A stretch of DNA of 64,000 nt from Scyliorhinus canicula (Eukaryota), in assembly GCF_902713615.1 (NCBI RefSeq), contig NC_052155.1:172583828-172647827 (forward strand). Direction: 5' to 3'. The position numbers were made by a program, and so were the translations under genes. This document shows, one piece after another, positions 6,320 to 38,240 of the stretch; position 1 is the stretch's first letter; every line of letters starts with the position of its first letter. The notes under the pieces were generated by a model. The model was not told the origin of the DNA. It saw only the letters and a list, made by a program, of their open reading frames with translations, and made no database searches.

Positions 6320-6452
6320 ACCAAATGACGTACAATTGACCAACCCGGAAGTAACAGTTCTTGCACTTTCAGCTTGAAACTGCCTTTTATTGAAGATTAC
6401 TTCCCGTTTTAACAAACTGTACGCTTTTTTCTCTCCTCCTCCTCTCAGTAAG
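6320..6452 (+). promoter_or_regulatory. Housekeeping-type promoter: CRE-like site, GABP/ETS site and 5'TOP/TCT pyrimidine tract
   Basis: TGACGT 6326-6331; CCGGAAGT 6345-6352; ACTTCCCG 6399-6406; 23-nt pure pyrimidine tract CTTTTTTCTCTCCTCCTCCTCTC 6424-6446, followed by possible donors CA|GTAAGG and AAG|GTACAG; locally CpG-retaining and repeat-free. Confidence 0.55.
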
Positions 6453-6964
6453 GTACAGTACGATCGTTTTATTTTCCATTATTGAAACAGGAATATCGCA
6501 CAAATGCATTATTTTTTGTGATTGTGCTTTTTAGAATGTGATGCTTAGCGTTAGTTGGATTCGCTAAAATGAAAATCCTCGCACCTGGAGAATACATTAA
6601 ATTAGAATTGTGCAAAGGATCGTGAAGGAGACAGATTTTGCAACGTTTTATGTAGTTTTCTAAAGAATACAATGATTGACCTTATTTTCAATTGAGGCAA
6701 TCTTTGATGTAGATATATTTCTGCATCGCCCTGATTTTTCAAATATATTTCTTTCCGGAGGATACGAATTCGGATCTCAGTGAATGAGAAGCATTCATAG
6801 CCTGAAGGTTGGAGGAGGATAGTGCAGCTGTAGAGGGTGACATTTCCTCTAGGTCCAAAAGCCCGCCTTTTAAAAGCAATTCCTCCTATTTTTGTCTGCA
6901 TGTTACTGTTCCGGTAATGTGTGTAGGCCTGCTTTGCAAGATTTTGAAAAAAATGTTCAATATA

Positions 6965-7133
6965 CGGGTTAGGTGGATTGGCCATGCTAAATTGCCCGTA
7001 GTGTCCTAAAAAGTAAGATTAGGGGGGGTTGTTGGGTTACGGGTATAGGGTGGATACGTGGGTTTGAGTAGGGTGATCATTGCTCGGCACAACATCGAGG
7101 GCCGAAGGGCCTGTTCTGTGCTGTACTGTTCTA
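6965..7133 (+). mobile_element. HE1-type SINE 3' half with CR1-derived tail
   Basis: TGGATTGGCCATGCTAAATTGCCC core and GGGCCGAAGGGCCTGTTCTGTGCTGTACTGTTCTA tail matching the CR1 end at about 31720-31761. Confidence 0.85.
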
Positions 7134-9114
7134 TACATGTACAAACTGGTAGTGCAATAACATTATACAGTGGAAATAGGCTTTGTTGATAATTTCCGGT
7201 TTGTGTACATTAACCTTAATGTTTTTATAAATGCTAAATTGTATTTTAATTTTGGCAACTGGAAAGGCATCATTTTGAATCAAATTTAAGGGTCGGAGTA
7301 GAGTTAAATTTGGCACCCTATAAGTATATAATACCCTTTTTAGACTTGTTTTTTTTACATATATTCACTGATCACAAACAACTTATGTGACCAGTGGCAA
7401 AACTACATGCAATTTTGAGTTTTTCCTATTATCTGCTAGACAAAACATATTACTAATTTGACTTAATTTATTCCTTTAAATCTGCCAGTGTCAAAACTGA
7501 GTTGTACAAATCAGAAATATGCTTTTAATTGGGTGCAACAGTGAAGCTGCACATAGTCATATAATGATGACCGTGCCTGGTTTATCAAGCATGCAACAAA
7601 GTGGCACTTTCTTGCATAAAGGATGGAAGTTAAGCGGGACAAGTTAATTGATGAGCCTCCTTAAGAGGCGCTATTTGGACTTTGCACGGTCAGTTTTATA
7701 GTAAATTTGGTGGAGACACCAGAATACGTCATGAGTCTGGTCTTGTGTATAATATTGGGATATCAATTAAAATATTATATACTAATAGATCTTCTGTGAC
7801 ATTGCTCATGGTAAATCATGGGATGCAGTCAAACATGATGTCTGAAATGTGATGGCTAAAGTGTGGACATTGCAGGAAATATACAATACTTTAAATATGT
7901 TACCAGTGGCATTCACATAGCAAGTTAGATTATATGGTCACACTTGTGTTGCTGATACTCACTCTTGCCTACCTTAGTCTCTTTTTCTCTTCTCTCTCTC
8001 AAACTTGTTACTTCTCTCTATCTCTCTATATGTTTGACTGGAAGGTAGAGGTTGGTTTGCCATTTGGAGTGAGTTTTCAGGAAAATATGGCCCTCAACAA
8101 TTCCCATCCTCAATCATACATACTTCACCTATTTGAGTCCATAGCATTGCTTAACTCTTTATCTTCCTACTGCTCATTCACCTTGCCACCATTCCCTGAT
8201 ATCGCCCACTATACCCACATCTTCCTCTTTAAATAAATTACTTAGCTGTTCAACTCTTATTTCCTCCCTTTCTTTCTCCACATGTATTTTACTCTTAAAG
8301 CTGTTTTAAAAGACAGAAATATTATATCTTTCAATGCACAACGTAATACTGTTGAAAGGAAGTTGCATGTAAATTTACCTGCTGCTTTATGGGTTCGTAA
8401 ATACGTGCTGCGATCAATTACAGGATCATTTTTCTATAGACCTGTAAGTCTTCAGCTTTTCACCAATACCAATAAAGTTAATTTCTCTGTGGTAACTTAT
8501 TATCTTTTCAATATTTATAATTCAAAGCCCTTTCTCCAAGTCCCTGAGCTGTCCATTACACGTAAATAAATATTTATCTTCCTTTTAGATAATTTCAATT
8601 TGATTCCTTATCTAGCCTTTTGGGACAGGGGCTCCTGTGTTCCCATCCTTTTGAATAAAGATAATTTTCTGTGGATTAAATTTTAACTGGCTTCTCATAC
8701 CAGAGAGTAATGTCTCTTCCTATCTGCCCCAGCAGTTTAATTCATTATTTTTGAACACCTTAATCAGATAACCTCCTGATTCTAAGCTAGGAAATATAAT
8801 CCAAGCTTGTCTGACGTAGCCAAATCCCTTCAGCGCAAATCTTATCCTGGTAAATCGTCAGAGGACTTTTTCCAAGCCTAATATATCCTCTCTAAAGTGA
8901 GCACCCAAAGTGAAATGTTTATTAGTTCAGTAGTACTTTCTTGCTTGCTTATATGTTCTTTATTTCTATAGTTCTAGTAGTGCATTTGCTTTTTACATCT
9001 GTGAATCGCTTTTAAATGGTTTTATTCAATGAACCCACAAAACTTCAAGTTAGATAGTATTCTAAACTGTATTTCTTGCATTACAAGTGTACTGCCTTTA
9101 ATTTATTACCATAG

Positions 9115-9540
9115 CAATTTGTACTTGCACAGTGCCTTTAAGATTAAAATCTCTTCCAAAGCATTCACAATTACATACCAAAAATAAATGGATACTGAGC
9201 CACAGAAAGTCTTATTAGGAAAAATTACAAAAATTTTGGTCATAGCAGGTTTTAAAGAGTGCCTCAAAGAAGCAGAGATGGGGGGATTTGTTTAAAGGAA
9301 ATTCATCTGGAGCCAAGTTGAGTGAAGGTATGGCCATGGCCACAAGTGAGGGTGTGAAGGGAGGTGGAGTTGCACAAGTCCTCTGAATCATCAGAGGTAT
9401 AGAGTCAGAAGCTCAGCTCAGGGCCAAATTAAATGCTTAATGGTTTTAAAGTCTGGTTCAGCCTGTGATGGTGGTGGGGGAGGAGGAGATGGAGTCAATG
9501 ATGAGGGTTCAGAGTTTGTGGCATTGGTTTTTCCAATGTT
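9115..9540 (-). mobile_element. Old L2-like LINE 3' fragment
   Basis: Degenerate match to the L2-type 3' end (…TGCCTTTAA…CAAAGCATTCACA on + strand) followed by G-rich body. Confidence 0.45.
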
Positions 9541-9934
9541 TTGTCACATTAACCTGCATTGGCTTACTGCCTAATGTATCTATTGATTTGTTTGTAATTT
9601 TCTGCTCTTTTTCAAAGTTGATTTTTGCCTCCTAACATGTATCATCTTCAAATTTGTCATACGTGGTCTTTAGTGGACATCATTAATTAACTGCTTGTGA
9701 ATTTGAAAATATCCCAGTTACCCAACTTTTTTCTTCCTACCTTCCAACTAATCTATATGGTCACCAATCTCGTGTGCCTCAATTTTAGCATGCAATCTAT
9801 TGTACAAAACCTTATTGAATGCCTTCCAAAGGTTCACCTGACTGGCTGTCAGGAACTTTAAATGTTAGAAACAGGAGTAGGCCATTCAGCCCGTTGAGCC
9901 TGTTCCATTATTCAAGATGATTATATCTGATTAG

Positions 9935-9966
<32 letters not shown>

Positions 9967-10953
9967 ACCGACACATATTGCATTGATATTTAGAAATCTT
10001 TGAAACTCTACTTTAAACATAATTGAGCTTCCGCAGTCCTCTGGGGTAAAGAATTCAAAAGATTCACCACCCTCTGAGTGAAAACATTTTGCCTCATCTT
10101 GGTCCTAAGTGGATTCCTCCTTATTGTGAAATTGTGTTCCCTGGTTCTAGACTTCCCAATCATGGGAAACACCTAACCTGCATCTACTCTGTCCATCTAC
10201 TCTGTGTAACCCTTTAATTAATTTGTCAACTTCAGTGAGATCACTTCTCATTCTTTGAATCCCTTGAGAACACAGACCCCAGTTTCCCCAGCCTCTCTTC
10301 AAAAGACAGTCCCACTGTACCAGTAACAAGTCTGGTGAACCTTCATTGTACTTGCTCTATGACAATAATATCCTTCCAAGGAAAGGGGATTAAAGCTGCA
10401 GATGCTACTCCAGATGCAGTCTAACTAAGGTTTGCTACTCCTGTGCTTAGATCCTCGTGCAATAAAGGCTAACATACATTTGCTTTTCTAACTGCTTGCT
10501 GCACCGGCATGTTGGCTTTAGTGACTTATTGACGAGGACACCCAGGTCCCTTTGTACATCTACATTTCTAATATCTTATCATTTAAGAAATACTCTGCAT
10601 ACCAGTTCCTCCTACCAAACTGGATAATCTGACATGTTTCCACATTATATTCCATCTGCCATGTTCTTGCTTACTCACTAAGTCTACAAATCCTCTGAAG
10701 CCACTTTGTATCTTCCTCACAACACATATTCTCACCTAGCTTTGTGTCATCTGCCAACTTGGAAATATCAAATAGGGCCCCACATCCAAATAATTGATAC
10801 AGATTGTGTGTTGGCATGAGGCAATGCCAGGTAGACTGCAGTATGAAGGAAAGCAGGTTTTATTGGCAACTAACAAGGGTAACTTTTATACAGGCACAGA
10901 ATCTCTACAGGTCTTCACATTCTGACTCCAGGGTTAAGGCTGACCAGGGCCAA

Positions 10954-11178
10954 GGCAGCACGGTGAAGCAGTGGTTAGCACTGCTGCCTCACGGCACAGA
11001 GGTACCAGGTTCGATCCGGCTCGGGGTCACTGTCCGTGTGGAGTTTGCACATTCTTCCCGTGTTTGCGTTGGTTTCGCCCCCACAACCCAAAGATGTTCC
11101 GGGTAGGTGGATTGGCCATGCTAAATTGCTCCTTAATTGGAAAAAATGAATTGGGTACTCTAAAATTTATTTTTAAAA
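10954..11178 (+). mobile_element. HE1-related SINE, short form, inserted in an LTR
   Basis: Full head and core; flanking direct repeat CTGACCAGGGCC. Confidence 0.88.
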
Positions 11179-11436
11179 ACTCTGACCAGGGCCTCGCTCC
11201 CCGGACCCTATGATTCCCCCCCGCCCCCCCGCCCCCCCGCCCCATTGGTCAGGGTTCACGTGCTCCCGCACGATAGGCCTGAATCTGTCACATGACCCTC
11301 AAAGACACATCCCTTAAAGGGGCCATGTTACGAATAACATATTTATGAATAAGCTATGTACAGTTCCTATATACAATATAAGAGCTGAGGAACACAAAGG
11401 AAGAGACTCCATAACAGTCCATCACAATGTTAAATA

Positions 11437-11785
11437 GGCAGCACGGTAGCATTGTGGATAGCACAATGGCTTCACAGCTCCAGGGTACCAGGTTCGATTC
11501 CGGCTTGGGTCACTGACTGTGCGGAGTCTGCACATCCTCCCCGTGTGTGCATGGGTTTCCTCCGGGTGCTCCAGTTTCCTTCCACAGTCCAAAGATGTGC
11601 AGGTTAGGTGGATTGGCCATGATAAATAGCCCTTAGTGTCCAAAATTGCCCTTAGTGTTGGGTGGGGTTACTGGGTTATTGGGATAGGGGGAGGTGTTGA
11701 CCTTGGGTAGGGTGCTCTTTCCAAGAGCCGGTGCAGACTCGATGGGCCGAATGGCCTCCTTCTGCACTGTAAATTCTATGATAAA
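11437..11785 (+). mobile_element. HE1 SINE, long form
   Basis: tRNA-like head, core and CR1-type tail GAATGGCCTCCTTCTGCACTGTAAATTCTATGA. Confidence 0.9.
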
Positions 11786-12451
11786 TGATAAACTTCTCAG
11801 GGGGTTTTCTGGGTCCTGTAGACCGCCTTTGTCTCCCAACTGGCTCCTCCAACTTGGAGGAATCAACAGTAGCATCCTTGACAGAATGTCTCTGAAAGTC
11901 AAACAACTCTGCAGGGTTATTGCCTTCTGTAGTTTCTTCCTAGGTAATCAAAGAGTTTCTTCAAGACTCGTCGATTCCCTCTGTTCTGGCTCCACCACAG
12001 GAGCACTGGTGCTGCCTGCCAGCTCCAAATGTTCCGAGTTTGGGGTAGTAGTTCCCCGGCTTCTCATGTGGTCAATGTGTTTCTTCATTGTCCTACTTTT
12101 CAAATCTGCCACAATTCGATCTGGTAGCCATAATGGGCCTGAGGCGAAGTTTCTGACTAGGACCAGGTCGCCCACTTGGAATGACCTGCCCCTTTTTTGT
12201 GAAGCATTCTGTTTCCACTGGGAGGTCTGCCGTGCCTCCACCCACTCCGCAACATTTGGGAAAATCCAAGTCCAAGTGGGTCTGGAGACGGCAGCCTATT
12301 AGTACTTCTGCGGGTACAATGCATTTGGTGGTATGGGGCGGGTTGTATTTTAAGACAAAAGAAAGTTGGCCAATCTAAGATGTAGTGCTCTCATGGACTG
12401 CTTTTTCATACCAGCCTTGAATGTTTGCACAGCTCTTCCCGCTAACCCATT

Positions 12452-12797
12452 TAGAACATAGAACAGTACAGCACAGAACAGGCCCTTCGGCCCTCAATGT
12501 TGTGCCGAGCCATGATCACCCTACTCAAACTCACGTATCCACCCTATACCCGTAACCCAACAACCCCCCCCCCTTAACCTTACTTTTATTAGGACACTAC
12601 GGGCAATTTAGCATGGCCAATCCACCTAACCCGCACATCTTTGGACTGTGGGAGGAAACCGGAGCACCCGGAGGAAACCCACGCATACAGGGGGAGGACG
12701 TGCAGACTCCACACAGACAGTGACCCAGCCGGGAATCGAACCTGGGACCCTGGAGCTGTGAAGCATTTATGCTAACCACCATGCTACCCTGCTGCCC
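12452..12797 (-). mobile_element. HE1 SINE, long form, second CR1 tail type
   Basis: Reverse complement has head, core and GAAGGGCCTGTTCTGTGCTGTACTGTTCTATGTTCTA tail. Confidence 0.9.
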
Positions 12798-13857
12798 CGA
12801 GGCAGTGTGATAAGGGCTGTTCAGATAAGGTGAATGTCATTTGTTTGGACGAAGTGCTGAAAGTCCTCTCCAGTGAAAGGACGTTTGTCAGGCAATATTA
12901 CTTCGGGAAGGCCACGGGTAGCAAACATTCGCCATAGGGCCACTACTGTGACTGCCGAGGCTGTTACTCCCATCTCTTGAACCTCCAACCACTTTGGGCG
13001 TTGACCAAAACGCAGAACATTTTGCCCAAGAAAGGGCCAACAAGGTTCACATGTACCTTTGTCCATGGGTGGCTAGGCCACCCTCATCATGGAGGTTGGC
13101 TGTAGGTGGCAGCATCCGCTCTGTCTGGCAGAGGCCCCACGGGCACCATGTTCAGTATCCTTATCTATGCCAAGCCACCAAATGAGTGAGTATTTTCAGT
13201 TTTGCCAGGCCTAGTTGGGCACAATGCAATTCTTGCAAGAACAGCTCCTGGGCTGGTGGTGGTACGACCACTCGAGAGCCCCAGAAAATGACTCCATCCT
13301 TGCAACTGAGTTCATCCTTAAGATTAAAGTAAGGCCTTAATTGGTCAGATTTATCATGGTGCCACCTGGTTAAGATCATGTGTTTCACTTTGGACAGGAC
13401 TGGGTCACATTTTGTCCAATTCTTTGTGACCAGACAAAACTTGCAATGTGTTCAAAAAGTACATGCCAGGATGATTTCCTGAGATACTGACAGCGTGCCA
13501 GGTTCTTTGGAAGTGGGAGCCGACTCAGCGCATCAGCGTTTGAAATTTGCGTGCCTGGCTTATACTGAATGATGTATTTGTAGGGCATCAACATTAAAAC
13601 CCATTGTTATAGTCTGGGAAAGACAATTGGAGGTATTGGCTCATGAAGGAGGCCCAACTTGTGGTCCATTATTGTCATGAAATATCGTCCATAAACATAC
13701 TGGTGAAATTTCTTGACACCATAGATTACGGCGAGGCCTTCTCAATCTGTGCATATTTATGCTCGGCATTAGGCCTCTCTGAGCCATCCTCCATTTTACA
13801 GATAGGACTGCCCTATCCTATATGGCAATGCAGGTCAGAATGATGGGTTTTCTCGGG

Positions 13858-14554
13858 TGTCATGGGTCTGCCCAACAACAGGTCTGCCCAGCAACAGGTA
13901 GAAATCTGCCTATCAACAGCAGTAACCAGCATTCAAAAGGCATAATGAGATGCAATTTTAAAAGTAACGAGATTCAGGTGTCTAGACAAATGATACATAG
14001 TTGTCAGAAGTGTAGAGCTAGTTTACATCTAACAGCCAGGAAGAGCAGTTTACATCTAACAGCCTGCGAGGCCGGTCTTCAATCTAACAGCCAGGTTCAA
14101 AGGCTACAATCTAAGTCTTCGAGCCAAAGACGTGCAGAAACCTTTATAAAGACAGTTTAAATATCTTTGCTAGACCAGGAAAAAAATGTTTCCTCGTCTT
14201 GACTATCAATCCTGTAATGTCTGGTAACTATAAGCTGAATTTGACTTCCAGATTTACTTAATTTGGACATTGTTTGGCGATGACTTATGGGGTCCAGGCA
14301 TCATAGATATAGTTTGGAACAAGGGGTGCATTCTACATAAACTGTGTGTGTGTTTAGTGATTCATATACTTAATTTCCTAAAGTATTGTAGTCCTGTTTG
14401 TGTATATTTGTCTTTTCTTTAATAAATATGACTTGGCTGGTTATTCTTACTGGGGCTTCAATCACACCATTCTGAAAACAAAACTATGCACCCCCACAAA
14501 GCGGCGTTCCAAGTTGGGATATCCTCGCAGATGCCATCAGCGTGGTTTGTGACA
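13858..14554. mobile_element. Solo LTR inserted in Gypsy pol
   Basis: TGTCA...TGACA ends; TSD CGGG/CAGG; removing it restores LVHFDPRKPIIL on the - strand. Confidence 0.75.
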
Positions 14555-14679
14555 CAGGTCAAAGTGAACCAATAGATTTGATAATTGTAGGACCCACTGA
14601 GCGTGTTGGAAGACTTGCTCCTATGGTTTCTTAGGAACAATGGAAACGTTGGTATTTTCTTTTTTTTTCTTTCTTTTTT

Positions 14680-14836
14680 TTAATAAATTTAGATTACCCA
14701 ATTATTTTTTCCAATTAAGGGGCTTTTTAGCATGGCCAATCCACCTACTCTGCACATTTTTGGGTTGTGGGGGCGAAACCCACGCAGACACAGGGAGAAT
14801 GTGCAAACTCCACACGGACAGTGACCCAGAGCCGGG
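14680..14836 (-). mobile_element. HE1-related SINE, short form, head truncated
   Basis: Core and A-rich tail; degenerate flanking repeat AACGTTG.TATTTT. Confidence 0.85.
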
Positions 14837-16860
14837 AACGTTGATATTTTCTTAACAGCATGTATAATGGTGCCACTGTCGTTGCTAGGTAGGGGGTAAA
14901 ATGTCAATAATAGTTTACCATCCCTTAGAAGGACTTTAATTCTACCAATTTCTTAAGTGCCGGGACTTTTCTTATGGCTCTCACCTCATCTTCGAATGAG
15001 TGCAGGCCTCTTTAATCCACTCTGAACCATAAGTAAGTGACCTTACTAGTCTGGAAAGTGCACTTCTCGTATTTCAGTTGGATTCCCGCAGCGCTGAATC
15101 TTAGCACCTTTTCTGAGCTTGCCAGGGGCTCCTCATGTGATATCCCTGTTACCAGGACATCATCCATGTGGATGACCACCTTTGGGATGCCCTGTGTAAA
15201 TTTTCCATTGTGCGCTGGAATATCGCACAGGCCGAGGAGATGCCGTAGGGTAAGCTGGCATATTGAAGCAGGTCTTTATACGTGTTAATTGTCGCAAGCT
15301 TTTGGGAATCTTCATCTAGTTCTAGCTACAAGTAGGCATGACTGAGGTGGAGTTTGGTGTACATGTGCCACCCCCCCTCCCGCCAACTTTGTATAAAGAT
15401 CTCAATTCGCATGAAACTGCGTATTTATCTACTCGGGGGCTGCCTGGTTGATTGTAAGCTAGCCATCCCTGCATATCCTAACTCAGCAGGCCAATTTTAA
15501 TACGGGGCAATGGAGGCTGCCCATTCTGAAAACTGCACGGGTCTGATAATTCCCATTCTTCAAGGTGTTTCAAGTTTGACTTCCGCTTTTTGATGCAAAG
15601 CGTAAGGGTACCGGGCTCGCTCTGTAACACCTTGGTATTAAGTTTGGGTTAAAATAAATCTTGGTCCTTACTCCTTTTATTCAACCCAACGCGTTCCGCA
15701 ACATGTCTTTATATTTGCATAAGACTTCCTGGAAGACACTGTCCGGGATTTTGAAAATTTCCAACCAGTTCAACTTGATTTGGTGCAACTAATCCCACCC
15801 CATAAGACCTGGTCCATAACCCTTGACAATTATCATAGGTAGCTGGACTTGACACTGGAGTCACAGTTGTTCCTAAAACCTTCAGGGTCGCCCCCGTATA
15901 TGTCGCCAACTTGGCTGTTGTGTCACTCAAGTTCAAAGACTGAATGCCTCCTTGAAGGTATTTAAACAGCTTTTCACCCACAACCATGGCCAGTAGTGTC
16001 AACCTGCATCTTTAGTTATCTTGCACTTACTGTGAGGACTATCGCTGTTTGGCTTACTTTCACCAAGTTTAATTTGTACATTCCCGGTTCTTCATCTGAA
16101 TTCCTCTCCACTTGATTTGCTAGAGCCATGACTTGCTGCTTTTAAAAAAGAATTCTGCTCTCTGCCTGGTGTGGCAGTGTGCCTGGATGTTGCTCTTCCT
16201 ATTGCACCAAAAACAAATAAACTCTCTGCACTAGCACGATTCTCCCCACATCGATAGAAACTGTCTTGACTTCTGGGCTGACAGCTCTATTTCTTTGCTG
16301 GCCACCGACTACAATCCTGTTCCTGGGATCGTGGTTGAACTTTCTCTATGCTTGTCTTGCCTTGCAGCCATGACACCCCACAACTGGTTCACCTCACCCT
16401 CTTGCACGCTCTGACATGCTCCCTCTCTCCGCACTCAGTTGCCTGAACAATCTCGATTACCCGGTCTAGGGTAATCTTCGTTTCAGCCAGAAGATTCTTT
16501 TGCTCACTTGAGTTGTTAATATTGCATATTAAACTATCACGTCGCCAAGTGCTGCACCAAGCTCACAATGTTCGGCCATTGCGAGAGTCTGGCAACGAAA
16601 GCGGAGATCTGTTCTCCTGGATCCCTGACATCCGAGTTAAACTTGTATCTCTGTGGTATGATCGAGGGTCTGGGTTGAAATGCTCCCTGACCAGCTTCAC
16701 CACTGTTCAAATGATATCAAGTCAGGAGCCTCCTGGGACATCAAAGTTCTTACAAGGTTGTTGGCCCACAAACTGTCAATAGGATAACTTTCTGTTTATC
16801 CTCCCCTGTTATTTCATTTGCCGCAAAGAAGTAACAGAGCCGCTCAATCATATTGGCTCC

Positions 16861-16898
<38 letters not shown>

Positions 16899-16993
16899 AC
16901 CCTCGGTCAAATGGCATTTTTCACTCTGTTGAATGATATTGTCAATGCTTCCTGACTTCTCTGTTCATTTTGGAGGCTTCTCCCTTACCCTTG

Positions 16994-17581
16994 TGGCATG
17001 TGAGAGTACCTTTAAGAAATTGAGGTTTATAAAATAGCTGTAGTGGATGTACCTTTAAGAAATGGGTGTTTATCAGTGATGTCAGAGTGTGGGTGGAGCT
17101 GGGCTGTCTGTCTCTTTTACTTTCACTTTGGGCTTGCAGCTACATGGTGTGTTTGGTTTCGTTTTAAATTTGGAGAAGCTGCAGTCACAGCAAGATGTGT
17201 ACGAATCTCTGAAAGCTTATGAATGTTGATTTGGTGATTTCAAAGTGGTAACTGTTCTCAGTAGTGAAGCTAAACCTGATGTCTTTCTGTAAACAGGGTT
17301 TTTTGCCATGTTGCAAAGAAAGATTAAGAGTTACTCAGAGTACTGTATTTTATGGGGGATTTATTGGTGTTGATAGTTGTTAAGATGTTTACTGTGGGCT
17401 TATAAAGTGTTAACTGGTTTCATAAATAAACATTGTTTTAATTTAAAAGTACTGTAGATTTCTGTTGCATCACACCTGCAGAGTGGCCCGGAGTGCTCCC
17501 CATAAGCACAAACTATTCAAAGTTGTGGGTCAGGTGAACTTCATGATACACTTTGGGGTTCTCTAAACCCTGGCCCAAACA
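16994..17581 (+). mobile_element. Solo LTR
   Basis: TG...CA ends, 4-bp TSD CTTG on both sides, internal AATAAA at about 17425. Confidence 0.75.
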
Positions 17582-17938
17582 CTTGAATTCAACGACTGTG
17601 GGCCTGCAATACATCCGGCGTATACACGTTACCAATGTGGTGATTTGAGGCAATACCAGGTAGACTTCAGTATGAAGGAAAGAAGGTTTTATTGACAACT
17701 AACAAGGGTAACTTATATACAGGTACAGAGTCTCTATACAGGTCTTCACACTCTGGCTCCAGGGTTCACTTTGATCAGGACCCTGCTCCCCAGGCCCCTC
17801 GCCTTTTCCCATCGGTTGGGGTTCACAAACTCCTGCACGATGGGCTCAGAGCCAGTCACATGGACCCGCCCCTTCTAGGGATTACACTGCACACAAATTG
17901 GGAACAGTTGGGGCTCAAGTACTGATCTTTGTGGTACC

Positions 17939-18342: not shown

Positions 18343-18474
18343 GTATCTACTAGTCACAGCCTGCCAATGCAAGAATGACCCATTTGTTCCTACTTTCTGT
18401 TTTATACTTGTTAGCTTTCCAGTTTATTACATTCTACCCCAATGTGCTTTTAATTTGATAACCAACCTCTTCCA

Positions 18475-23002: not shown

Positions 23003-23939
23003 AGGTTGATGACTTTTAAAACTATATTATCAAACTAAGAAAAAGTCAGATAAAAAAAAATAAAATTTAAGTGTTTTGAATTATTTGATTAGTTCACCTT
23101 CTCTTTCTCTCATTGATTAATAGAAAAAGGACAGCCAATTAGATCGCTCCCACAGATAAGAGTTATATTCTAATATAACAAATGGCCTAGTTCCAATTTC
23201 CAGCCTCTGGTTTTATAATCAAACTAAATAATTAAAACGTAACGTAGAAAGGAAAGAGAGGAAGGTCATGTATTCTGAAACAAGGCTTCGAGCCGTGGCT
23301 CTTGCCTTGCGTCACTCCATTGACAGTTCCAAAATCATTTGTGCTATGCTAACAGATAATTCTTGTATATTTCTGTTGTGTTGAACTTATGGTCCAGTGA
23401 GGTTCCTCCCAAAAATAAAGTTGGTTGGAAATTTTAAATCAAAACTGACTCAGCTTAGAATTTATATGACTTTTGAAATCATTTTTGTGGTTAAAGAATA
23501 TCCTTTGTTAGTAGGTTTTGGATTGAGTTATGGTGGTGAAATAACTTGTTTACATTGTGCATTTCAGTCTCTCAATGTGCTTTGTTTTAACTAACTGCAT
23601 TTGCAGCACAATGCTATTCAGTAACTTTTCAGCCAAATTGTGGACAGCAAGATCATACAAACCACAATTAGATAAATGGTTAGTCAACATCATGGCCACT
23701 GATGGAGGCCAGAAATACCAGATAAACCAACCTTCCCTGGTCTATTCACCCCCGTGCATGTGCAGACATACAAAATGGCTATGGGGCAAGTTAGGGTCTG
23801 GCTAGCCTGCTGATATAATTAAAATTAGCACAGAGCTGCAATTGCATTAATTAATTTACTGATTAAGTTTTGATGATAATTACCAATATTAACTGTACTA
23901 ACACCTAATATATATAGTAGAATAGCTCCTAGGAAAATT

Positions 23940-26640: not shown

Positions 26641-27888
26641 AAATAAATTTCAATTATTGATAAAGGTATTGGAATAGAACATAGAACATAACTTCAAGAA
26701 ATGGCTCCACCAGTTAATTTATAAGAAACGGCATTTTATTCCAACAATAAACAACTATTTACAGAGTGCTTTAAATGGTCTTTCCGCACTCTGCTCTAGG
26801 GTTCAACTGCTGGGACAAGTCTCAGTACGTCTCAGTGAATTCCCAGCTCCCTTCCCTGATTGTACTATCTTGTCATATAACCACTCCCTCAGAGAATGTC
26901 CCTTCTAGCTACTACATTTCTTCCACCTATAAGACCCTTTATACACATGGGAACCGTTAAATTATACATGGGAATAGTTAAATTGTAATTGTATGCGGGG
27001 TGATCCTATATGATAGCAGAAACCTAGTAAACTTGTCTTTAAGGATGCAGGTGGTTGCTTTTTCCAGCCAGCCTGCCTCTTGGCCAGTCCATTAGATGAA
27101 GGATGGTACAGTGCCATTCTGATGTGTTTATTCCGTTAAAAGTCATAATCTTCTGAAATTCAAGCACCGTTCAAAGCCATTTCGTTGTCTGAAACAAGGA
27201 CATCTGCAATCCCATGGATTGCAAAACACTGGCACAGATTCTCAACTGTGGTGTAAGCAGTTGTGGATCTCTTAAACGCCTCCATCCACTTTGAATGGAC
27301 ATCCATTAGTAACAAAACATTGCGCCAATAAATGGCCTCACATAGTCAACGTGAACCCTAACTCATGGTCAGCCTGGCTATTCTCATGACAGCAGGTAAC
27401 ATTTGCTGAAATTGGCACTGATTGCAGTGGTTTACCATTCTTTCAATTGTTGCGTCGATGCCAGGTCACCACACGTAGCTTCTTGCTAGCATCTTCATTT
27501 TAGACAGGCCGGGATGGGCACAATGTAACTCTTCCAGCAATAATTCTCTTCCTGGCCTGGGGACGACCACTCCCGATCCCCAGAGGATTATCACACCCCC
27601 CCAAACCTGAACTCGTCTTTACGGATCTGGTAAGGCTTAATTTCCTTTGAAGCTCAAAATTTCAATTTCACCTGTTTTACCTTCGATAACACTGCATATC
27701 TGTTTGTCCAGTACTTGTTAAGCTGACTCTGGCAAAGTATCTAGAAAATTCATGGCTATTCTTGTCTCTGCTGCTGCTGCATCCATCTCTGGCAAAGGAA
27801 TATGACTCAGGGCATCTGCATTGGATATTTGTGTCCCGAGACTATCTTTAATGGTGTACTCGTGAGCCGACAAGAACAACACCCAACA

Positions 27889-28115
27889 TGGCAGCACGGT
27901 GGCGCAGTAGCTAGCACTGCTGCCTCACGGCACCGAGATCCCAGGTTTGATCCTGGCCCTGGGTCACTGTCCGTGTGGAGTTTGCACATTCTCCCCGTGT
28001 TTGCGTGGGTTTCGCCCCCACAACCCAAAGATGTGCAGGTTAGGTGGATTGGCCATGCTAAATTGTCCCTTAATTAGAAAAAAATATAATTGGGTACTCT
28101 AAATTCATTTTCAAA
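27889..28115 (+). mobile_element. HE1-related SINE, short form
   Basis: Head, core and A-rich tail. Confidence 0.88.
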
Positions 28116-28119
28116 AAGT

Positions 28120-28250
28120 ATTTACTTTGTATATCTATGTATGTCCTATGTTGTTTTTTCATGTATGGAATGATCTGTCTGGACTGTACGCAGAACAATA
28201 CTTTTCACTGAACCTCAGTATATGTGACAATAAACAAATCCAAATCCAAC
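28120..28250 (+). mobile_element. Rex1/Babar-like LINE 3' end
   Basis: ACTTTTCACTG...ATGTGACAATAAA followed by (CAAATC)n tail. Confidence 0.5.
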
Positions 28251-28680
28251 CATCCATAATAGTTGACCATCCCCAGAAAGGATTTGAGTTCTGAGGTATT
28301 CCTTGGGAGCTGGTACCTCTTGTTGTTTCACCTTTTCCTCTGCAGCTCCTGTATGTCGAACCCAGGTAAGCCACTTCATTAGCCTGGAAGGTGCACTTTT
28401 CTCTTTCGAGATGGATACCAGCTTCCTGGAACCTCCTTAATACTATTTCTAAATACGCCAAGTGTTTTTTTTTGTAGGTTCTGGTACTAATACGTCATCC
28501 AAGTACACAACGACACTGGAAAGCTTTGCAATAAACTCGTCATGTTTCATTGGGAATATAGCACATGCTGATGAAGCTCCAAATGGCAAGCGTGTGTACT
28601 GGTGTAACCCCTTATGGGTGTTTATGGTCACATATTCCTTCGAGGCATCGCCCAGCTCCAGCTGCTGGTAGTCATGACAC

Positions 28681-31600
28681 GTGGCTGCAGGGATGGTGTA
28701 GGAGGGATAGTTTCAGTTACGTGGATAATTGGAGCACATTCTGGGGAAGGTGGGACCTCAACAAACAGGATGGTTTGCACCTAACCCAGAGGGGCAACAA
28801 TATCCTGGGAGGAAAATTTGCTAAGGCTTTTCGGGGGAGTTTAAACTAATTTGCCAGGGGGATGGGAAAACGAGCTGTAGTCCGGAAGCCAGTGTTGAGA
28901 GTAGTGAGGTACTGAGGAGGAAATCAAGGTCGTAGGAGTGTACCGGCAGGCAGGAAGGTAAACATGGAGCGTGGATTGGTACTTGGGACTATGATGTTGT
29001 GGCCATTACGGAGACATGGTTAGAACAGGGGACAGGAATGGTTGTTGGAAGTTCCGGGGTATAGATATTTCAGTAAGAGTAGGGAAGGTGGTAAAAGAGG
29101 TGGAGGAGTAGCATTGTTAATCAAGGATAGTTTAATGGCTGCAGAAAGGCAGTTCGAGGTGGATCTGCCTACTGAGGTAATATGGGCTGAAGTTAGAAAT
29201 AGGAAAGGAGTGGTCACATTGTTAGGAGTTTTCTATAGGCCCCCAAATAGTAATAGAGATGTGGAGGAAAAAATTGCACAGCAGATTATGGATGGGTGTG
29301 GAGGTCTTAGGGTAGGTGTCATGGGTGACTTTAACTTTCCAAATATTGATTGGAACCTCTATAGGTCGAACAGTTAGGACGGGGCAGTTTTTGTACAATG
29401 TGTACAGGAGGGTTTCCTGACACAATATGTGGATAGGCCAACAAGAGGTGGGGCCACATTGGATTTGAAACTGGTTATGAACCGGGTCAAGTGTTAGATT
29501 TGTTTGTGGGAGAGCGCTTTGGTGATAGTGACCACAATTCGGTGTCTTTCACTATTGCAATGTACAAGGATAGGGCCATACGGCAGGGCAAGGTTTGTAA
29601 TTGGGGGAGGGGTAATTATGATGCGATTAGGCAAGAATTAGTCAGCATAAGATGGGAACAGAAACTGTCAGGGAAAGGTACAAATTAAAAGTGGAGCTTG
29701 TTCAAGGAATAAATACTGCATGCCCTTGATAGATATTTCCCTGTCAGGCAGGGTGGAAATGCCCGTGTGAGGGAGCCATGGTTCACAAGAGGTTGAATGT
29801 CTTGTCAAGAGGAAAAAGGAAGTGTATGGAAGGATGAGAAAAAGAGGTTCAGTTGGGTTGCTTGAGGGTAACAAGGTAGCAAGCAATGAGCTAAGAAAAA
29901 GGGCTTAGGAGAGCTAGGAGGGGGCATGAGAAGTCCTTGGCGGGTCGGATCAAGGAAAACTCCAAGGTTTTTTACTCTAATGTGAGAAATAAAAGAATGA
30001 CCAGGGTGAGGTTAGGGCCGGTCAAGGACAGTAGTGGGAACTTGTGCATGGAGTCAGAAGAGATAGGAGAGGCGTTGAATGAATACTTTTCTTCAGTGTT
30101 CACCGAGGAGAGGGGCTATGTTTTTGAGGATGAGTGTGAGATGTAGGCTGGAGGAGGTAGATGTTCTGAGGGAAGATGTATTAGCAATTTTGAAAATCCT
30201 GAGGGTCGACAAGTCCCCTGGGCCAGATGGGATATATCCTAGGATTCTTTGGGAGGCAAGGGATGCGATTGCAGAGCTTTTGGCTTTGATCTTTGGATCC
30301 TCGCTGTCCACAGGGATAGTGCCAGAGGACTGGAGAATGGCAAATGTTGTTCCTCTGTTCAAGAAAGGGAATAGGAATGACCCTAGTAATTATAGGCCGG
30401 TTAGTCTTACTTCGGTGGTCAGTAAGTTAATGGAAAGGGTCCTGAGGGATAGGATTAATGACCATTTGGAAAGATGCAGCTTAATCCGGGACAGTCAACA
30501 TGGATTCGTGAAGGCTAAGTCTTGCCTCACAAATTTGATTGAATTCTTTGAGATAACTTTGAGGTGTGTCGATGAAGGTAGAGCAGTTGATGTTGTATAC
30601 ATGGATTTCAGTAAGGCGTTTGATAAGGTTCCCCATGGTCGGCTCATGAAAAAAGTAAGGAGGTGTGGGATAGAGGGAAATTTGGCCAATTGCATAAGTA
30701 ACTAGCTATCACATAGAAGACAGAGGGTGGTGGTGGATGGAAGATTTTCAGACTGGAGACCAGTTACCAGCGGTGTACCACAGGGATCAGTGCTGGGTCC
30801 TCTGCTATTTGTGATTTTTATAAATGACTTGGAGGAGGGGGCTGAAGGGTGAGTCAGTAAATTTGCTGATGACACCAAGATTGTTGGAGTAGTGGATGAG
30901 GTGGAGGGCTGTTGTAGGCTGCAAAGAAATATTGATAGGATGCAGAGCTGGGCCGAAAAATGGCAGATGGAGTTTAACCCTGATAAGTGCGAGGTGATTT
31001 ATTTTGGTAGGCCAAATCTGAATGCGGATTACAGGGTCAACGGCAGGGTTCTGAGGAATGTGGAGGAACAGAGAGATCTTGGGGTTCATGTCCACAGATC
31101 TTTGAAGGTTGGCACTCAAGTCGATAGGGCCGTGAAGAAGGCCTATAGTGTGTTAGCGTTTATTTACAGGGGGCTTGAGTTTAAAAGCCGTGTGGTTATG
31201 CTGCAACTGTACAGGACCCTGGTGAAACCACATTTGGAGTATTATGTGCAGTTCTGGTCATCTCATTATAGGAAGGATCTGGAATAATTGGAAAGGGTGC
31301 AAAGGAGATTTACCGGGATGCTGCCTGGATTGGAGGGTAGGTCTTGTGTGGAAAGGTTGAGGGAGCTAGGGCTTTCCTCTTTGGAGCGAAGGAGGATGTG
31401 AGGCAACTTAATAGAGGTTTATAAGATGATGAGGGGGCTAGATAGAGTGGACGCTCAGAGACTATTTCCTTAGGTGGAAGCAGCTGTTACAAGGGGGCAT
31501 AACTATAAGGTTCGGGGTGGGAGATATAGGAGGGATGTCCGAGGTAGGTTCTTTACTCAGAGAGTGGTTAGGGTGTGGAATGGACTGACTGCTGTGATAG

Positions 31601-31761
31601 TGGAGTTGGATGCTTTAGGAACTTTCAAGCGGTTATTGGATAGGCACATGGAGCACACCAGAATGACGGGGAGTGGGATAGCTTGATCTTGGTTTCAGAC
31701 AAAGCTCCGCACAACATCAAGGGCCGAAGGGCCTGTTCTGTGCTGTACTGTTCTATGTTCT
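28681..31761 (+). mobile_element. CR1/HER1 LINE, relatively young: end of ORF1 plus ORF2 endonuclease and reverse transcriptase, with stops and frameshifts
   Basis: Motifs DGLHL, GGGVALL, YRPP, MGDFNFPNIDW, KSPGPDGI, NYRPVSLTS, YMDFSKAFDKVPH, FADD; (TTCTATG)n tail; 7-bp TSD ATGACAC at 28674-28680 and 31762-31768. Confidence 0.95.
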
Positions 31762-32315
31762 ATGACACATGTCTAACTTAGTGAATATTTGACCTCCAAC
31801 CAGTTTCTCATATAGATCTTTAATTTTGGGCATCTACTTGTCCAGCTTTGTGACCTGGTTCACTGTCAGCTTGAAATCCACGCAGGTGTGAATGGTTTTA
31901 TCTGTTTTCACAACTGGAAAAATGGGTGCTGCCCACTCTGCAAATTGTACCGATTGAATGACGCCTAGATCTTCCAGCTTTTTAAACTCTGTTTCAGTCT
32001 TCTCTAATAATGTATAGGGCAAAGGTCTAGCCCTGAAAAATCTTTTTCCGAGTTCACATGCATTCTCACCTTGACTCCTTTTATATTCCCCTGTTCTTCC
32101 AGAATCTTGGTACTTGCGTGGGTCCCCTTGGATTTCCTAGAGCCTATCACGCCCCATTAAGCTTAGTCTCTGACCAGCCAACACGGCTAAAGCTGGCAGA
32201 TTGCTGTCGATAGCTCACTCGGGTCATCCTTGTGCCCATTATTTTTATGGCCTCCCCATATATCTCGTCAGGCTGGTCCCAGTGTTCTTCAACCTCGAGG
32301 TGAATCCCTTCATTT

Positions 32316-32538
32316 AAAATTTTTTTTAGAGTACCCAATTAATTTTTTCCATTTAAGAGACTATTTAGCACAGCCAATCCACCCAGCCTGCACATCTTTG
32401 GGTTGTGGGGGCGAAACCCACGCAAACACGGGGAGAATGTGCAAACTCCACACGGACAGTGACCCAGAGCCGGGGTCGAACCTAGGACCTCGTCGCCGTG
32501 AGGCGGCAGTGCTAACCACTGCGCCACCGTGCTGCCCC
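32316..32538 (-). mobile_element. HE1-related SINE, short form
   Basis: Head, core and tail. Confidence 0.88.
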
Positions 32539-34417
32539 CGCCATGTGGAGCTGGCAAACCATGATAAGGCAGCTCCTAGCCTAGCAGAGAGAGATAGTTG
32601 GAGGCAAGGCCACTATACCTTTCAGATCCATTTTATAAGAGGCTAGATTTTGATCACTGCAACTTGCAATTAATCTTTCGGCCAGACATTAATGTGCACT
32701 GCAGAATACATAAAGCAGAAAAGCATAATGTAAGTTATATACTAATATAAAGATTGGAAATTTCAACCATAACATGCATAAACTATGAAATACAACCTGG
32801 AAAGTCCTTATGGCTAGAAGATTGCATGCAGTAAGCTGGGCAGCACAGACCATTAGATTGTAAAGGCTCCTCAAGTTCTTGATCCTGTCTAAACCATGAG
32901 AGCTGCATAAGGGCTAATGCACAGTAAGACTATGAGCACATTACATCCCAACACAATCTGCAGGAACGGGATTATTTTTAGCAGTTGATGTTTGTTTGCT
33001 TGCATTGCAAACCAATCAATGGTGTCACTAATAATGTGGTGCATGTGAAGATTATTCAGAACCCTGTTTTATGTGGATGGCAGGATTAGCTTTCCATTCA
33101 TAGAGGTGAGGAACTAGGACAGGTGTGTTTGAAATCCAGAGACGTTTGAAGAAGTGGAGACAATGTGAGTGCTGGGGCACATTGCAAGCTGAGAGCTGGT
33201 TAGCTACATGGTGGACTTGTCAATGTTTTTTTAAAATCTCCTGAAGATTTTTAATTTAGAATATTGAAATTATAAATTAAAAATGGTCATGAGATTTGAA
33301 AATATGGAGTAAGGATTGGCACCAACTGCAGCTATCCTGCATTACATTGTTGACACTGCAATTGGGTGTGGTTTTGGGGGCTGGGAGGGAGGAGTGCGGT
33401 CGTGGAGAAATTAAGGTTATGGGTTGGCGTCAGAGCTTTCGGGATATGGGAATTGTTGGTGCTGAGAATTTTTAGGATCTGAGAAGTCACCTCTACTGTC
33501 TGCAGAAACTGCTTTTGACAACTATTGTTGTTACTCATTTCATCTAATATAAAATATAGGGTCAACCTCTCAAAATATAATCCTATGAATGCATTCAGCA
33601 TTTTGTGCATTTATATCCTCAATAGTAATTTGTAATTTATGGTGTTTGTACAATTCTGCTTCCATGTTTTTCTTATTTATACTGGTATACTGAAGAATCA
33701 TTGCAAAAAAATGACCAGTTTAAAAAAGAGATACTGACATCTCCTGACATTTCAGGTTTGAATATTGGTGCGAGTGTTCCATAACAAATTTGCATTTCTG
33801 AAAAATGAAACATAAAGCATTCATGTGATAACTATATTTGTTGCATAGCAACTTGCAGATGCTGAACCAACAATAAGGGATTCAAATACGGATGGTGAAT
33901 TTATTTTTAATTTTGTGACGCAATGGCAGCACTAACATTCTGAAGTTGAGCAGTATATGCAAAATATATGCCTATTTACCGTCATTCAGAATTTAGGAAT
34001 TAGCTTGCATGGTTTTTGTAAACAGATGCATTTCATGGTTTCAATTTTTAACACAATTAAATATTACTCTTATACACAGGCAGGGACTAACCTGGTTGTT
34101 ATTTTATCCCTTTCCTTTGAAGCTTCCTTGCAGCATGGGCCTTTCATGGCTTTTAGATGGCCTAGAGAGCAGATGGAGGTTTGCTCTGATATCTTCACTT
34201 AAAAATTGTCTGGTAAAAGAAAAAACTTGAATTATATAGTGCCTTTCATGTCTCATGGCTTTACAGCCAATATGTTTGAAGTGTAATCATTGGTGTAACC
34301 TAGGGAAACAGGCAGCCAAGCTCAGCAGATGATGCTGAATTCTGTTTTGGCTAGCCAAACTCTACAAGGCCACTGCTCAGGTTGTTCCTATGGAGAATTG
34401 TCTAAATTGATACATTC

Positions 34418-34676
34418 CTGGTTCGGTGGTAGCACTGTAGCCTCTAAATCAGATGGTTGTGGTTTCAAGTCGCTTTCCAGAATTAAGTACACAGGCAAAG
34501 TTTGAAGTACATAATCCAAGGACTTCAAGGGAGTACTGATGGAATACTACAGTCGGAAATGCTGTCTTTCAACCAGAGCATTAATCTGAGACCTGTCTGT
34601 CCTTTGAGGTGGATGTAAAAGATTCCATGGCATTATTCAGAGAAGAATAGGTCAGAACTTGTGCCAATATTTATCC
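34418..34676 (+). mobile_element. Ancient Deu-domain SINE (SacSINE1-like)
   Basis: tRNA-like head GGTAGCAC...GGTTGTGGTTTCAAGTC; GCTGTCTTTC...AGGTGGATGTAAAAGATTCCATGGCA...GCCAATATTTATCC resembles the Deu domain (recognised from memory). Confidence 0.65.
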
Positions 34677-35913
34677 ATAGAATCATAGAAATGTTACAGC
34701 ACAGAAGGCAGCATTTTGCCCCATCATGTCTGTTGCTGGCTCTCCTCAGGAGAAATTCAAGTACTGCCACTCCCTAATTCTCTCTCCACACCCCTGCACA
34801 TTCCTACTTTTTTTTAGAAAATGTGGAAATATTTACTACCCTTTCAGGCAACCAATGAAGAAAGATTATGTGGTCATTTCTGGACCAGGTGCTGGGTGTT
34901 TACACTGCTGTGCTGGGGTTGGGTAGTTTGGGACACTGTAGTGAAGGGAGGGAATAGAGGTGGTGATAATTCTTTGGGGTGAAGTTAGTGGAAGGTGAGG
35001 ATATGGGAGGTGAGCTGTGACAGAGGAATAGTTGCGGGCCTGTACTACGTATAAGCAGGAAATGGAAGGAGAGAGACTTTAAGACCTTGTAGGGAACCTG
35101 GCAAAGATGAGCGGTTGTTGGGGCTGCAGGGAAGACTGGTTAGGCTGTGGATGGAGAGCAAAGAGAATGGAGAATTTAGTGTTGAAGGTTAGAGATAGGC
35201 TGAATTATATGGGAGTAGTCAATTTAAAATGAAATGAACTGAACCTTTGTAATGAATGGAGGATAGGTCAACTTCACCCCAAAGATCTCGGGCTGGCATG
35301 CAGTGAACAAAGTCAAGATTTCAGAATAGAATAAAGAAGGCGAAAGTAGCAAGTCGATAAAAAATAATCTTATATAAATAAACTTAAATAACTTTTTTAA
35401 AGAAGAGATACATTGGCCTGGGAAATTGTAAGACTTATTGCAACAGTTTAGGCAAACTGTATAAGAGAAAATGTGCCCAAAGGAAAAGTAAAGTTGTCTG
35501 AAAGACATAAAATTGAATTAAGGTTAAGGGTGTTGTTCAGAAGTGGAAGTGGTGTGTATGGTTTGGATTTGGGCATAGAGAGCACAATATATAATTAAGT
35601 TAGCTGTGAACGTAAAATTAGGGGGTATGGCAAGAGATGGACTGTAAAAATAACTTCAGGAAGACATGGATAGATCGGAGGCAACAGCAATTTAATGCTT
35701 AATACATTCTGGCGGATAAACAAGGAACATACACCTAATAGACACTGAACGCTATGAATGAACAGACAGACCTATGTTTATAAACATTAATTAATAGAAA
35801 TTGCAGATGGATAAAGTCATAAAGAGACCAATGCCAATTTATGGCTTTATAAATACAGGCATAGAATACAAAAGGAAAGAGATAAGAACACGTGTACAAA
35901 GAAATGGTTAGGC

Positions 35914-36345
35914 CAGGGGTGGGCAAACTTTTCCGTGCAAGGGCCACATTCAGAAATTTACAATTTTAAAGGGCCGCATAGTATATTGATTAATAGTCCC
36001 GGTTGTAACCAATTAGCGTGCAGCATATACCTCAGCGCTTCCCCCGGCGGCATCCTGCCTTTAGCCCTCTTTTTCTCTACTTTTCAAAAATGGCGCTTTA
36101 CCCGGTCATGATTCTGGGCGCCTCATATAGAACATAGAACAGTACAGCACAGAACAGGCCCTTCAACCCTCGATGTTGTGCCGAGCAATGATCACCCTAC
36201 TCAAGTCAACGTATCCACCTTATTAACCTTATAAAAAAAAATTTAAAAATATATTTTTTTTTTCTAATGACTTGATCTTGGTGGGCCACATAAAGACCTT
36301 TGGCGGGCCGCATGCGGCCCGCGGGCCGTAGTTTGCCCACCCCTG
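35914..36345. mobile_element. Non-autonomous hAT (Charlie-like) MITE
   Basis: Terminal inverted repeats CAGGGGTGGGCAAACT / AGTTTGCCCACCCCTG; perfect 8-bp TSD GGTTAGGC. Confidence 0.92.
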
Positions 36346-36535
36346 GGTTAGGCCATAGAGTATTGGTACAGTTTGGGTTATTCCATTACAGAAGGACATG
36401 AAAGCTATTCACCGAGATGAAACTGTGGTTATAAGGAGACTTCATATATTGGGATAATTTTCACAGGAACAGAGGAGATTTAATCAAGGCAGTTACAATT
36501 GTAAAGGGCTGTGATAGAATGAATAAGGAAATATT

Positions 36536-37233
36536 GGGGGCGATTCTCCGATATTGAGGCCAAGTGTTCACGCCGTCGTGACCTCCATCGCGTTTCACGA
36601 CGGCGCGAACAGGGCCCGTGCACGACAGCACGGCCCTGCAGCGGTTCACGCTGCTCCAGCCTCCTTACGCGGCGGCAAATGGGCGTCGCGCCAATCCGCA
36701 CATGCGCAGTTGGGCCAGCTCAATCCTGCGCATGCGCAGTTGGGCTGTGCCATGCTGCGCATGCGCAGGGAACTTCTTACGCGCGCCGGCCCCGACTCAA
36801 CATGGGGTCGGTGTTCAGGGGCCGGCCGTGGTGGAAAGTAGGCCGGGGAGGGGGGGAGAGAGTAGGCCCGGGGGGGGGGGGGGGGGGGGGGAGAAGAGGA
36901 GGCTGGCCCGCCGATCGCTGCGCCTCGATCGCGGGCCAGACCCCTTCGGAGCACCCCCCCCCCCCTCCCACAGGCCGCCCACCCGAGCGTTCCCGCAGAG
37001 TTCCCACCGGCAACAATCAGGGGTGAACGGCGCCGGTGGGACTCTGTCGCATCGGGACGGCAGCTTGGCCCATCTGGGCCGGAGAATCAGCGGCCCCGCC
37101 GATTCCAGCGGCCCGCAGCTAGCGCCGTGCCAAACGCGCTGGCGCAAATGGTGTTGCTTCTCCACACCTCGGGGCGTCGTGGCGCGGTTGCGGCGATTCT
37201 CCGGCCTGGCGCGGGCCTCGGAGAATCGCCCCC
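36536..37233. mobile_element. GC-rich non-autonomous PIF/Harbinger-type element
   Basis: Terminal inverted repeats GGGGGCGATTCTCCG / CGGAGAATCGCCCCC; 3-bp TSD ATT. Confidence 0.85.
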
Positions 37234-37990
37234 ATTATTTTCTTTAATTAGAGAGTAATTTATGAGAGGTTATCACTTTACAATTATTTCTGAGAGTGAG
37301 GATGTAGGAGGATTTCTGTATGGAGAGAATTATTGGAACATGGAATTCTTTGACACATGGTGGAGTTGAGGCAGACAATAATTCTTTTAAGGACAAAGTG
37401 GGTAAATATTTAAAGCGGAGGAAAATATGGTTGCCATCAGGGCAGGAAAGTGACATGGCAAAGATCTGGTACATTTGACAAGACATGCTTAATCAAATGG
37501 TCATCTATTCAGTAAATAACTATGTTTTTAATTGACTGGAAGCTGGGATGTGGAATTGGGTGCATAGTGCACTACAGTGAAAAACCTTTCAAAGAAATTC
37601 GCAAGACTTCACTGGTATTAATGAGCCAATTTTTTTTATTAGTTCTTTGGAAACTAAATAGTATTTCCTCTATTATACTGTAATAGATAATAACAAACTG
37701 CTGCTTAATTAAATATTTCTGAAGAAAAGCTCATTTTAACTTCTTAGTATAAACAAAACACAGGTATTTTAATTGCCACTTGTGAATCTATCTCAAGAAA
37801 AAAAGCACAAATGTTATCATGTTCTTTGGGAAGCTATTATTCAGAAAGGTTTTTAAAAATTAATCTTCTGGCCTGTTTTCGGGTCATTTGAAAAAACAAG
37901 CAAACATATATGCTGTTCGAAGGACACTTGCATTGAGGAAAGCTAACTAATCTTTTTGTAAAAAATTATTATATTCAACTTTTTGTTTTA

Positions 37991-37996
37991 AATAAA
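37991..37996 (+). terminator. Candidate polyadenylation signal
   Basis: AATAAA with U-rich upstream sequence and CA/U-rich downstream sequence, ending an AT-rich non-repeat segment. Confidence 0.35.
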
Positions 37997-38240
37997 GATG
38001 CTACAATTACACATCATATTCTTTCATTTGAGTAAGAATCTCTTGAGTGAAAATTAATCAATTAATAGCATTAAATTCTGAAATCCTGTTTTGCATATGC
38101 AGATTACGTTATTGAAAATTGCAAGCATGTGTGTACTTGTTAATGCGCTTCAGCTAGCAGATAATTCTGAGAAAAATATCAATGCAAATTAGGTTTTTAA
38201 GAGAGGTTTGATCCTCTTTGCTAAAGTATTAAGGTACTCA

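Follow-up and report, generated by a model that had tools for sequence, protein, structure and literature searches.

Does a pyrimidine tract with a splice donor just behind it mark the 5′ end of a gene that hosts small nucleolar RNAs (snoRNAs) in the catshark Scyliorhinus canicula? The question is raised by a 64,000-nt stretch of contig NC_052155.1 (NCBI RefSeq assembly GCF_902713615.1, positions 172,583,828 to 172,647,827), which is called the window below; all coordinates count from its first letter, and its + strand is the forward strand of the contig. The original prediction, made from the letters alone, described a non-coding 5′ terminal oligopyrimidine (5′TOP) gene of the GAS5/SNHG type at 6320-38010, whose RNA would begin at C6424, the first base of the tract, and whose products would be intronic snoRNAs. 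We find that a spliced RNA is truly made from the + strand at this locus. The explanation that we favor, with a probability of roughly 0.6, is a low-abundance, spliced, and apparently non-coding RNA polymerase II transcript, i.e., a long non-coding RNA (lncRNA). The reading of the locus as a 5′TOP snoRNA host gene is not supported.

The splicing evidence comes from an alignment that covered positions 5001-11000 and that used the contigs of runs X1, X2, and X15 together with one raw oligo-dT RNA-seq run, X20. Among the joints listed for this region, which are better supported than a further 19, 6051>6187 is the only one with GT..AG ends. It occurs in one contig of X1 (depth 40.1), in one contig of X15 (depth 16.2, with 123 letters on the shorter side), and in two raw reads of X20, and these runs come from three studies. 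The exon 1 donor reads GGCAAT|GTAAGC, and the splice sites of this intron score 12.9 (acceptor) and 7.0 (donor) on a splice-site weight matrix. The X20 reads on the exons share a single orientation throughout, which, when taken with the GT..AG ends, is consistent with transcription of the RNA from the + strand.

The X15 record is 658 nt long and consists of 5929-6051 joined to 6187-6452, plus another 269 nt that match nowhere in the aligned region. Its second block ends exactly where the string CAGTAAG|GTACAG places a GT at 6453-6454. The donor that was proposed to follow the tract (6452|6453) is therefore used in RNA, and its weight-matrix score is only 4.4. No joint that leaves 6452 is among those listed in the aligned region, although weaker joints (depths of 9-14) do appear there. 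Therefore, the exon that follows exon 2 lies beyond 11 kb.

The same contigs relocate the start of the RNA. The X1 contig ends at about 5874, and the 5′ end of the RNA is there or further upstream; X15 coverage is nil at 5601-5800. Rather than beginning at C6424, the RNA has its start about 550 nt upstream of the tract, and the tract is internal to the second of at least two exons. A start site elsewhere, which the original prediction had itself named as counting against it, is thus what the contigs reveal. The tract forms the 3′ end of exon 2. It lies behind exon 1, 410 nt or more from where the spliced RNA begins, and is therefore no cap-site TOP. The depth of the X1 contig falls from 40 to about 10 past position 6241 or so, and AA|GTATGA (6244|6245) is a possible alternative donor. 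X2 covers 6462-6924 at depth 10 and has nothing over 5801-6400, so that its coverage begins between 6400 and 6462. This stretch could be unspliced RNA from near the tract, an antisense or independent RNA, or read-through from the repeat at 6965-7134.

Between 6.45 and 8.0 kb, the proposed exon chain found no support in the RNA data. Short exons separated by introns of 90-310 nt had been expected in 6.45-7.9 kb, and none were seen; contigs run unspliced across this region (6384-6738, 6425-6983 as 6425-6647 and 6626-6983, 7350-7689, and 7758-7972), and unspliced X15 contigs of low depth extend over much of 6.4-9.7 kb. We also counted exon-like AG..GT pairs between 6.45 and 38 kb, using a simple and approximate weight matrix for scoring, and found 24 on the + strand versus 23 on the − strand (7 versus 3 at a stricter cut-off). 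Since such pairs are equally common on both strands, the approximately nine exon candidates of the original prediction correspond to chance expectation. Exon prediction with this matrix does not discriminate between strands and gives even the verified donor at 6453 a low score, and we propose no downstream exon from it.

The sequence elements that suggested a 5′TOP gene were all found where they had been reported, and none of them is unusual alone. The ETS/GABP-type motif CCGGAAGT lies at 6345-6352 on the + strand, within exon 2, and is the sole copy in the window, where chance alone would give about two copies of this octamer in 64 kb when both strands are counted. The tract is a run of 23 pyrimidines with C as its first base (6424-6446, + strand; TCTCTCC at 6430-6436), and it is one of 12 runs of at least 20 pyrimidines on this strand of the window. 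An AATAAA is present at 37991. The base that precedes C6424 is a G, versus the pyrimidine of a TCT initiator, and cAMP response element (CRE)-like and GABP motifs are located 70-100 nt upstream of the tract.

The composition of the locus is also informative. Observed/expected CpG values are 0.9-1.2 across about 5.9-6.7 kb versus 0-0.6 further on, and the surrounding DNA is AT-rich and CpG-poor. This undepleted CpG content would fit a small unmethylated promoter region. The window as a whole is composed of single-copy DNA plus transposons. The islands that had been described as repeat-free (5600-6960, 7140-8000, 23020-23800, 32650-34250, and 37250-38230) are indeed single-copy, since they match only themselves in the 4.22-Gb genome, save for one short, old repeat fragment.

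These observations show that transcription starts at 5.87 kb or slightly upstream, within a short stretch that is AT-rich and in which CpG is not depleted. The transcript has two or more 5′ exons (6187-6452, preceded by one that spans at least 5876-6051), it is spliced from the donor at 6452|6453 to an exon located past 11 kb, and the GABP motif and the pyrimidine tract are simply part of exon 2. The transcription unit probably extends to at least 38 kb, and the RNA presumably carries no snoRNA payload. Its function, if any, may be that of an ordinary lncRNA, or may reside in mere transcription through the locus.

Features of the locus, with coordinates counted from the first letter of the window
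Feature	Position	Strand	Observation
Exon 1 (minimum extent)	5876-6051	+	X1 contig 5876-6051 (depth 40) and X15 contig 5929-6051, both joined to 6187
Intron 1, 135 nt, GT..AG	6052-6186	+	Joint 6051>6187 in X1, X15, and X20
Exon 2, 266 nt	6187-6452	+	658-nt X15 record aligns in one piece and stops exactly before the GT at 6453
Intron 2 (start)	6453 to beyond 11000	+	Donor AAG|GTACAG; no acceptor in 5001-11000
Very high-copy interspersed repeat in intron 2	6965-7134	not assigned	Many genomic copies at 94-97% identity; summed contig depth up to 6x10^5
C/D-box-like candidate, 282 nt	7564-7845	+	AUGAUGA...CUGA with a 7-bp closing stem that includes G-U pairs; unverified; sole match in 6453-38010
Single-copy island with AATAAA at 37991	37250-38230	+	Probably within the transcribed unit; only X1 and X15-X18 carry it

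All three frames of the joined exons 1 and 2 (442 nt) are interrupted by stops, and the longest stretch that stays open has 49 codons. No match in a protein collection was obtained for the antisense frame that is open for 47 codons at the end of exon 2, and an exact protein look-up for the open reading frame (ORF) at 6605-6985 on the − strand returned no record. When the window's 150 longest ORFs, taken from both strands, were compared with Pfam, only the reverse transcriptase and endonuclease of long interspersed elements (LINEs) were identified, and 150 + strand ORFs of 51-82 amino acids yielded nothing credible. Weak matches to SPT_ssu-like and Hexokinase_2 were rejected because their signature motifs are absent from all six frames, and a match to APD1-4_N (E 0.0057) is at chance level among 150 ORFs. 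Outside the window, in 160 kb on its downstream side and 80 kb on its upstream side, ORFs of at least 134 amino acids carry only transposon domains, apart from one ribosomal protein P1-like ORF, in a test that is insensitive to short exons. This P1-like ORF is intronless, has 158 codons, and lies on the − strand about 75 kb upstream of the window (contig stretch 172503828-172513827, ending near position 5526 of that stretch; Pfam Ribosomal_60s, E 1.2e-23), and it is probably a processed retrocopy. The region is gene-poor, and the usual description of an lncRNA (spliced, longer than 200 nt, and without coding potential) holds for the part of the RNA that was seen.

These results bear directly on the alternative that exons 1 and 2 are the non-coding 5′ leader of a protein-coding gene, which would be transcribed from an alternative upstream promoter and would have its coding exons beyond the window or behind a CpG island at 51.5-52.5 kb. 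This island is strong (51500-52500; GC content of 0.65-0.74 and observed/expected CpG of 0.9-0.97), seems to be single-copy save for a short interspersed element (SINE) at 52490-52790, and sits 45 kb downstream of the transcript on the same strand. Its + strand has an ATG at 51834 followed by CAG|GTGAGA near 52009. The island may thus comprise the promoter plus first exon of a separate gene, and under the leader explanation it is a candidate for the main promoter. Two further points speak for a leader: catshark genes are long, and the 269 nt after exon 2 in the X15 record are unplaced. Against this, the Pfam analysis of the window and its flanks recovered nothing beyond transposon domains and the P1-like retrocopy, although this is a weak test for short exons. 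We regard the leader explanation as unlikely, albeit one that deserves to be kept in mind.

In X20, the only raw run that we examined, mean depth over the exons is about one read, corresponding to about 5 reads in 15 million. Expression is therefore low, which does not agree with the housekeeping level expected for a GAS5/SNHG-type host gene. At the far end of the proposed unit, the island at 37250-38230 is present in just five of the listed runs, from two studies: X1 (share 0.29) and X15-X18 (shares 0.31-0.66). The same five runs have the largest shares of the 5′ region (6300-8000), and X1 and X15 are also the source of the spliced contigs. By comparison, X2 and X3 include part of the first island and have a share of 0.00 at 37250-38230. 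In the search with the 5′ region, X7, the one run of a second species, had a share of 0.16. Because the islands are single-copy and the contig sets are small (220-340 Mb in total versus a 4.2-Gb genome), the joint presence of both islands provides reasonable, indirect support for a unit that reaches 38 kb, and it carries no information on whether the RNA ends at the AATAAA at 37991. A transcription unit of about 32 kb, extending to at least about 38 kb, is plausible. Thus, the prediction of a spliced non-coding gene with this approximate span holds in that the RNA is spliced, has no long ORF in the part seen, uses the very donor that was proposed, and probably covers the distance, whereas its chain of short exons is not supported.

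Low expression also invites the interpretation that the RNA is transcriptional noise, produced by sporadic read-through or by a repeat, spliced at chance sites, and not indicative of any useful gene. Such an origin would agree with the very low depth in the one true RNA-seq run, the heterogeneous and unspliced contigs, the transposon-rich surroundings, and the weak donor at 6453. However, an identical junction in three studies is not what noise would predict, nor is a first island that is single-copy and has a composition like that of a CpG island. Furthermore, the two islands are 31 kb apart and are both carried by the five runs that best represent the 5′ island, and by no other listed run. 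Noise therefore appears quite unlikely.

We next consider the introns, where the functional products of a host gene would reside. A search of the whole window with Rfam at the gathering score yielded no snoRNA. With permissive E-values, applied to the whole window and to three sub-regions, only chance-level matches were obtained, and none on the + strand overlaps either of the two intronic candidates described below. The best of the permissive matches, SNORD75 at 26885-26934, was rejected (20 bits, E=1, − strand, and without a box C). When the SNORD75 model was searched against the whole genome, only 65 of 2.3 million candidates were scored, and the L7Ae-family loci of the genome gave no Rfam match. 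We also scanned 6453-38010 de novo for a perfect box C and a box D within 45-300 nt, flanked by an adjacent closing stem. The one match (7564-7845) is single-copy. Dinucleotide shuffles yield a C/D match with a stem of at least 7 bp in 7.75% of cases and one with a stem of at least 5 bp in 32%. The candidate folds with a z-score of −2.95; of 58 windows taken from the single-copy islands, 5 likewise reach −2.9 or lower, exon 2 among them. There is no read peak over 7564-7845; contigs cross its 5′ boundary at a depth of 3-5, which is equal to that of the flanking intron. This candidate is thus near chance level. An H/ACA candidate at 23191-23328 (+ strand) was rejected, as its z-score is −0.42 and 66 of 200 shuffles fold equally well; Rfam reported no + strand overlap in this segment, and nearby snoRNA-type matches fall far below the gathering score. 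Overall, the predicted intronic payload was not recovered by Rfam or by the box scan, and reads do not pile up over either candidate.

A weakened form of the 5′TOP host gene can nevertheless be formulated, in which an alternative start at C6424 would produce a 29-nt 5′TOP first exon and an intron would carry a lineage-specific snoRNA or small Cajal-body RNA (scaRNA), for example at 7564-7845. The CRE-like and GABP motifs, the undepleted CpG around the tract, and the onset of X2 coverage near the tract with nothing upstream would all be consistent with such a start. The C/D-like candidate would likewise contribute its perfect box C, its box D, its 7-bp stem, its fold, and its single-copy status. 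Opposing these points, the G at −1 does not conform to a TCT initiator, the spliced contigs hold the tract internally, and the number of reads in X20 is unlike that of GAS5/SNHG hosts. The candidate itself is matched in quality by the shuffles and by local windows noted above, its 5′ end is crossed at the depth of the intron, and it belongs to no Rfam family that was matched. This proposal is consequently very unlikely. Least probable of all is that the lncRNA is a weakly expressed, non-TOP host for a lineage-specific long C/D-type snoRNA or scaRNA at 7564-7845 in intron 2. If true, this would make the element a new snoRNA or scaRNA, specific to sharks, which the evidence does not favor.

Several considerations weigh against the lncRNA explanation as we have formulated it. 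First, a 29-nt first exon from 6424 would be nearly invisible in the alignment used here, and a minor alternative start at C6424 is possible. The coverage of X2, from which exons 1 and 2 are missing, may reflect a second start close to the tract, or else an independent or antisense RNA. Second, runs X1 and X15-X18 are not recorded as RNA data and show low-depth, unspliced coverage, so that the argument for the extent of the unit is indirect. Third, the negative Rfam results for snoRNAs come without a positive control in this genome, where lineage-specific snoRNAs are possible. Finally, the part of the RNA that was seen is its 5′ part, and coding exons further downstream are possible.

Some additional elements of the window were recorded during this work. 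An extremely abundant interspersed repeat is present in two copies (6965-7134 and 10954-11179), with a summed RNA-contig depth in the hundreds of thousands, and many false “joints” connect these copies. The segment 36525-37244 is a 720-bp GC- and CpG-rich element whose ends are 27-nt inverted repeats (93% complementary) and which includes a 29-nt tandem repeat containing GCGCATGCGC palindromes. The segment resembles a small non-autonomous DNA transposon and yields a spurious match to a Burkholderia small RNA (sRNA) model. A near-perfect 105-nt hairpin at 56001-56105 and a long inverted repeat of about 300 nt at 48620-48916 match plant or animal microRNA precursor models far below the gathering score, and both are most likely repeat-derived.

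If the lncRNA explanation is correct, the locus contributes a single spliced non-coding transcript of low abundance to a catshark chromosomal region that is poor in genes and rich in transposons, and this has little meaning beyond annotation. The useful lesson concerns method. A GABP site, a pyrimidine run, and a GT can mimic a 5′TOP first exon by eye, and here this combination is the end of an internal exon. Likewise, the opposite strand offers AG..GT “exon” chains just as often.

According to the account of GAS5 given in PMC4584312 (citing Smith & Steitz 1998), the oligopyrimidine tract of that gene occupies the 5′ terminus, within exon 1, and nine or ten box C/D snoRNAs are encoded in the introns. 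The catshark RNA resembles GAS5/SNHG hosts in that it is multi-exonic and spliced and, as far as it was seen, lacks a long ORF; a pyrimidine tract and an ETS/GABP motif also lie near the 5′ region of the locus. Unlike that of GAS5, however, its tract closes exon 2 on the 3′ side; no snoRNA family was detected, and expression is low. Among the defining features of such hosts that were tested, a spliced RNA without a long ORF was found, and a cap-site TOP, intronic snoRNAs, and abundant expression were not. Because it shares only that one feature, we have not classified the locus as a snoRNA host gene. Alternative upstream first exons of coding genes are similar in having non-coding 5′ exons and a very long intron, whereas no downstream coding exon was identified here in the window or in the 160 kb beyond. 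The locus also corresponds to generic vertebrate intergenic lncRNAs, which share the low abundance, the few small exons, the long transposon-filled introns, the weak CpG-rich promoter, the lack of an ORF, and the gene-poor neighborhood, and among which this transcript has nothing distinctive.

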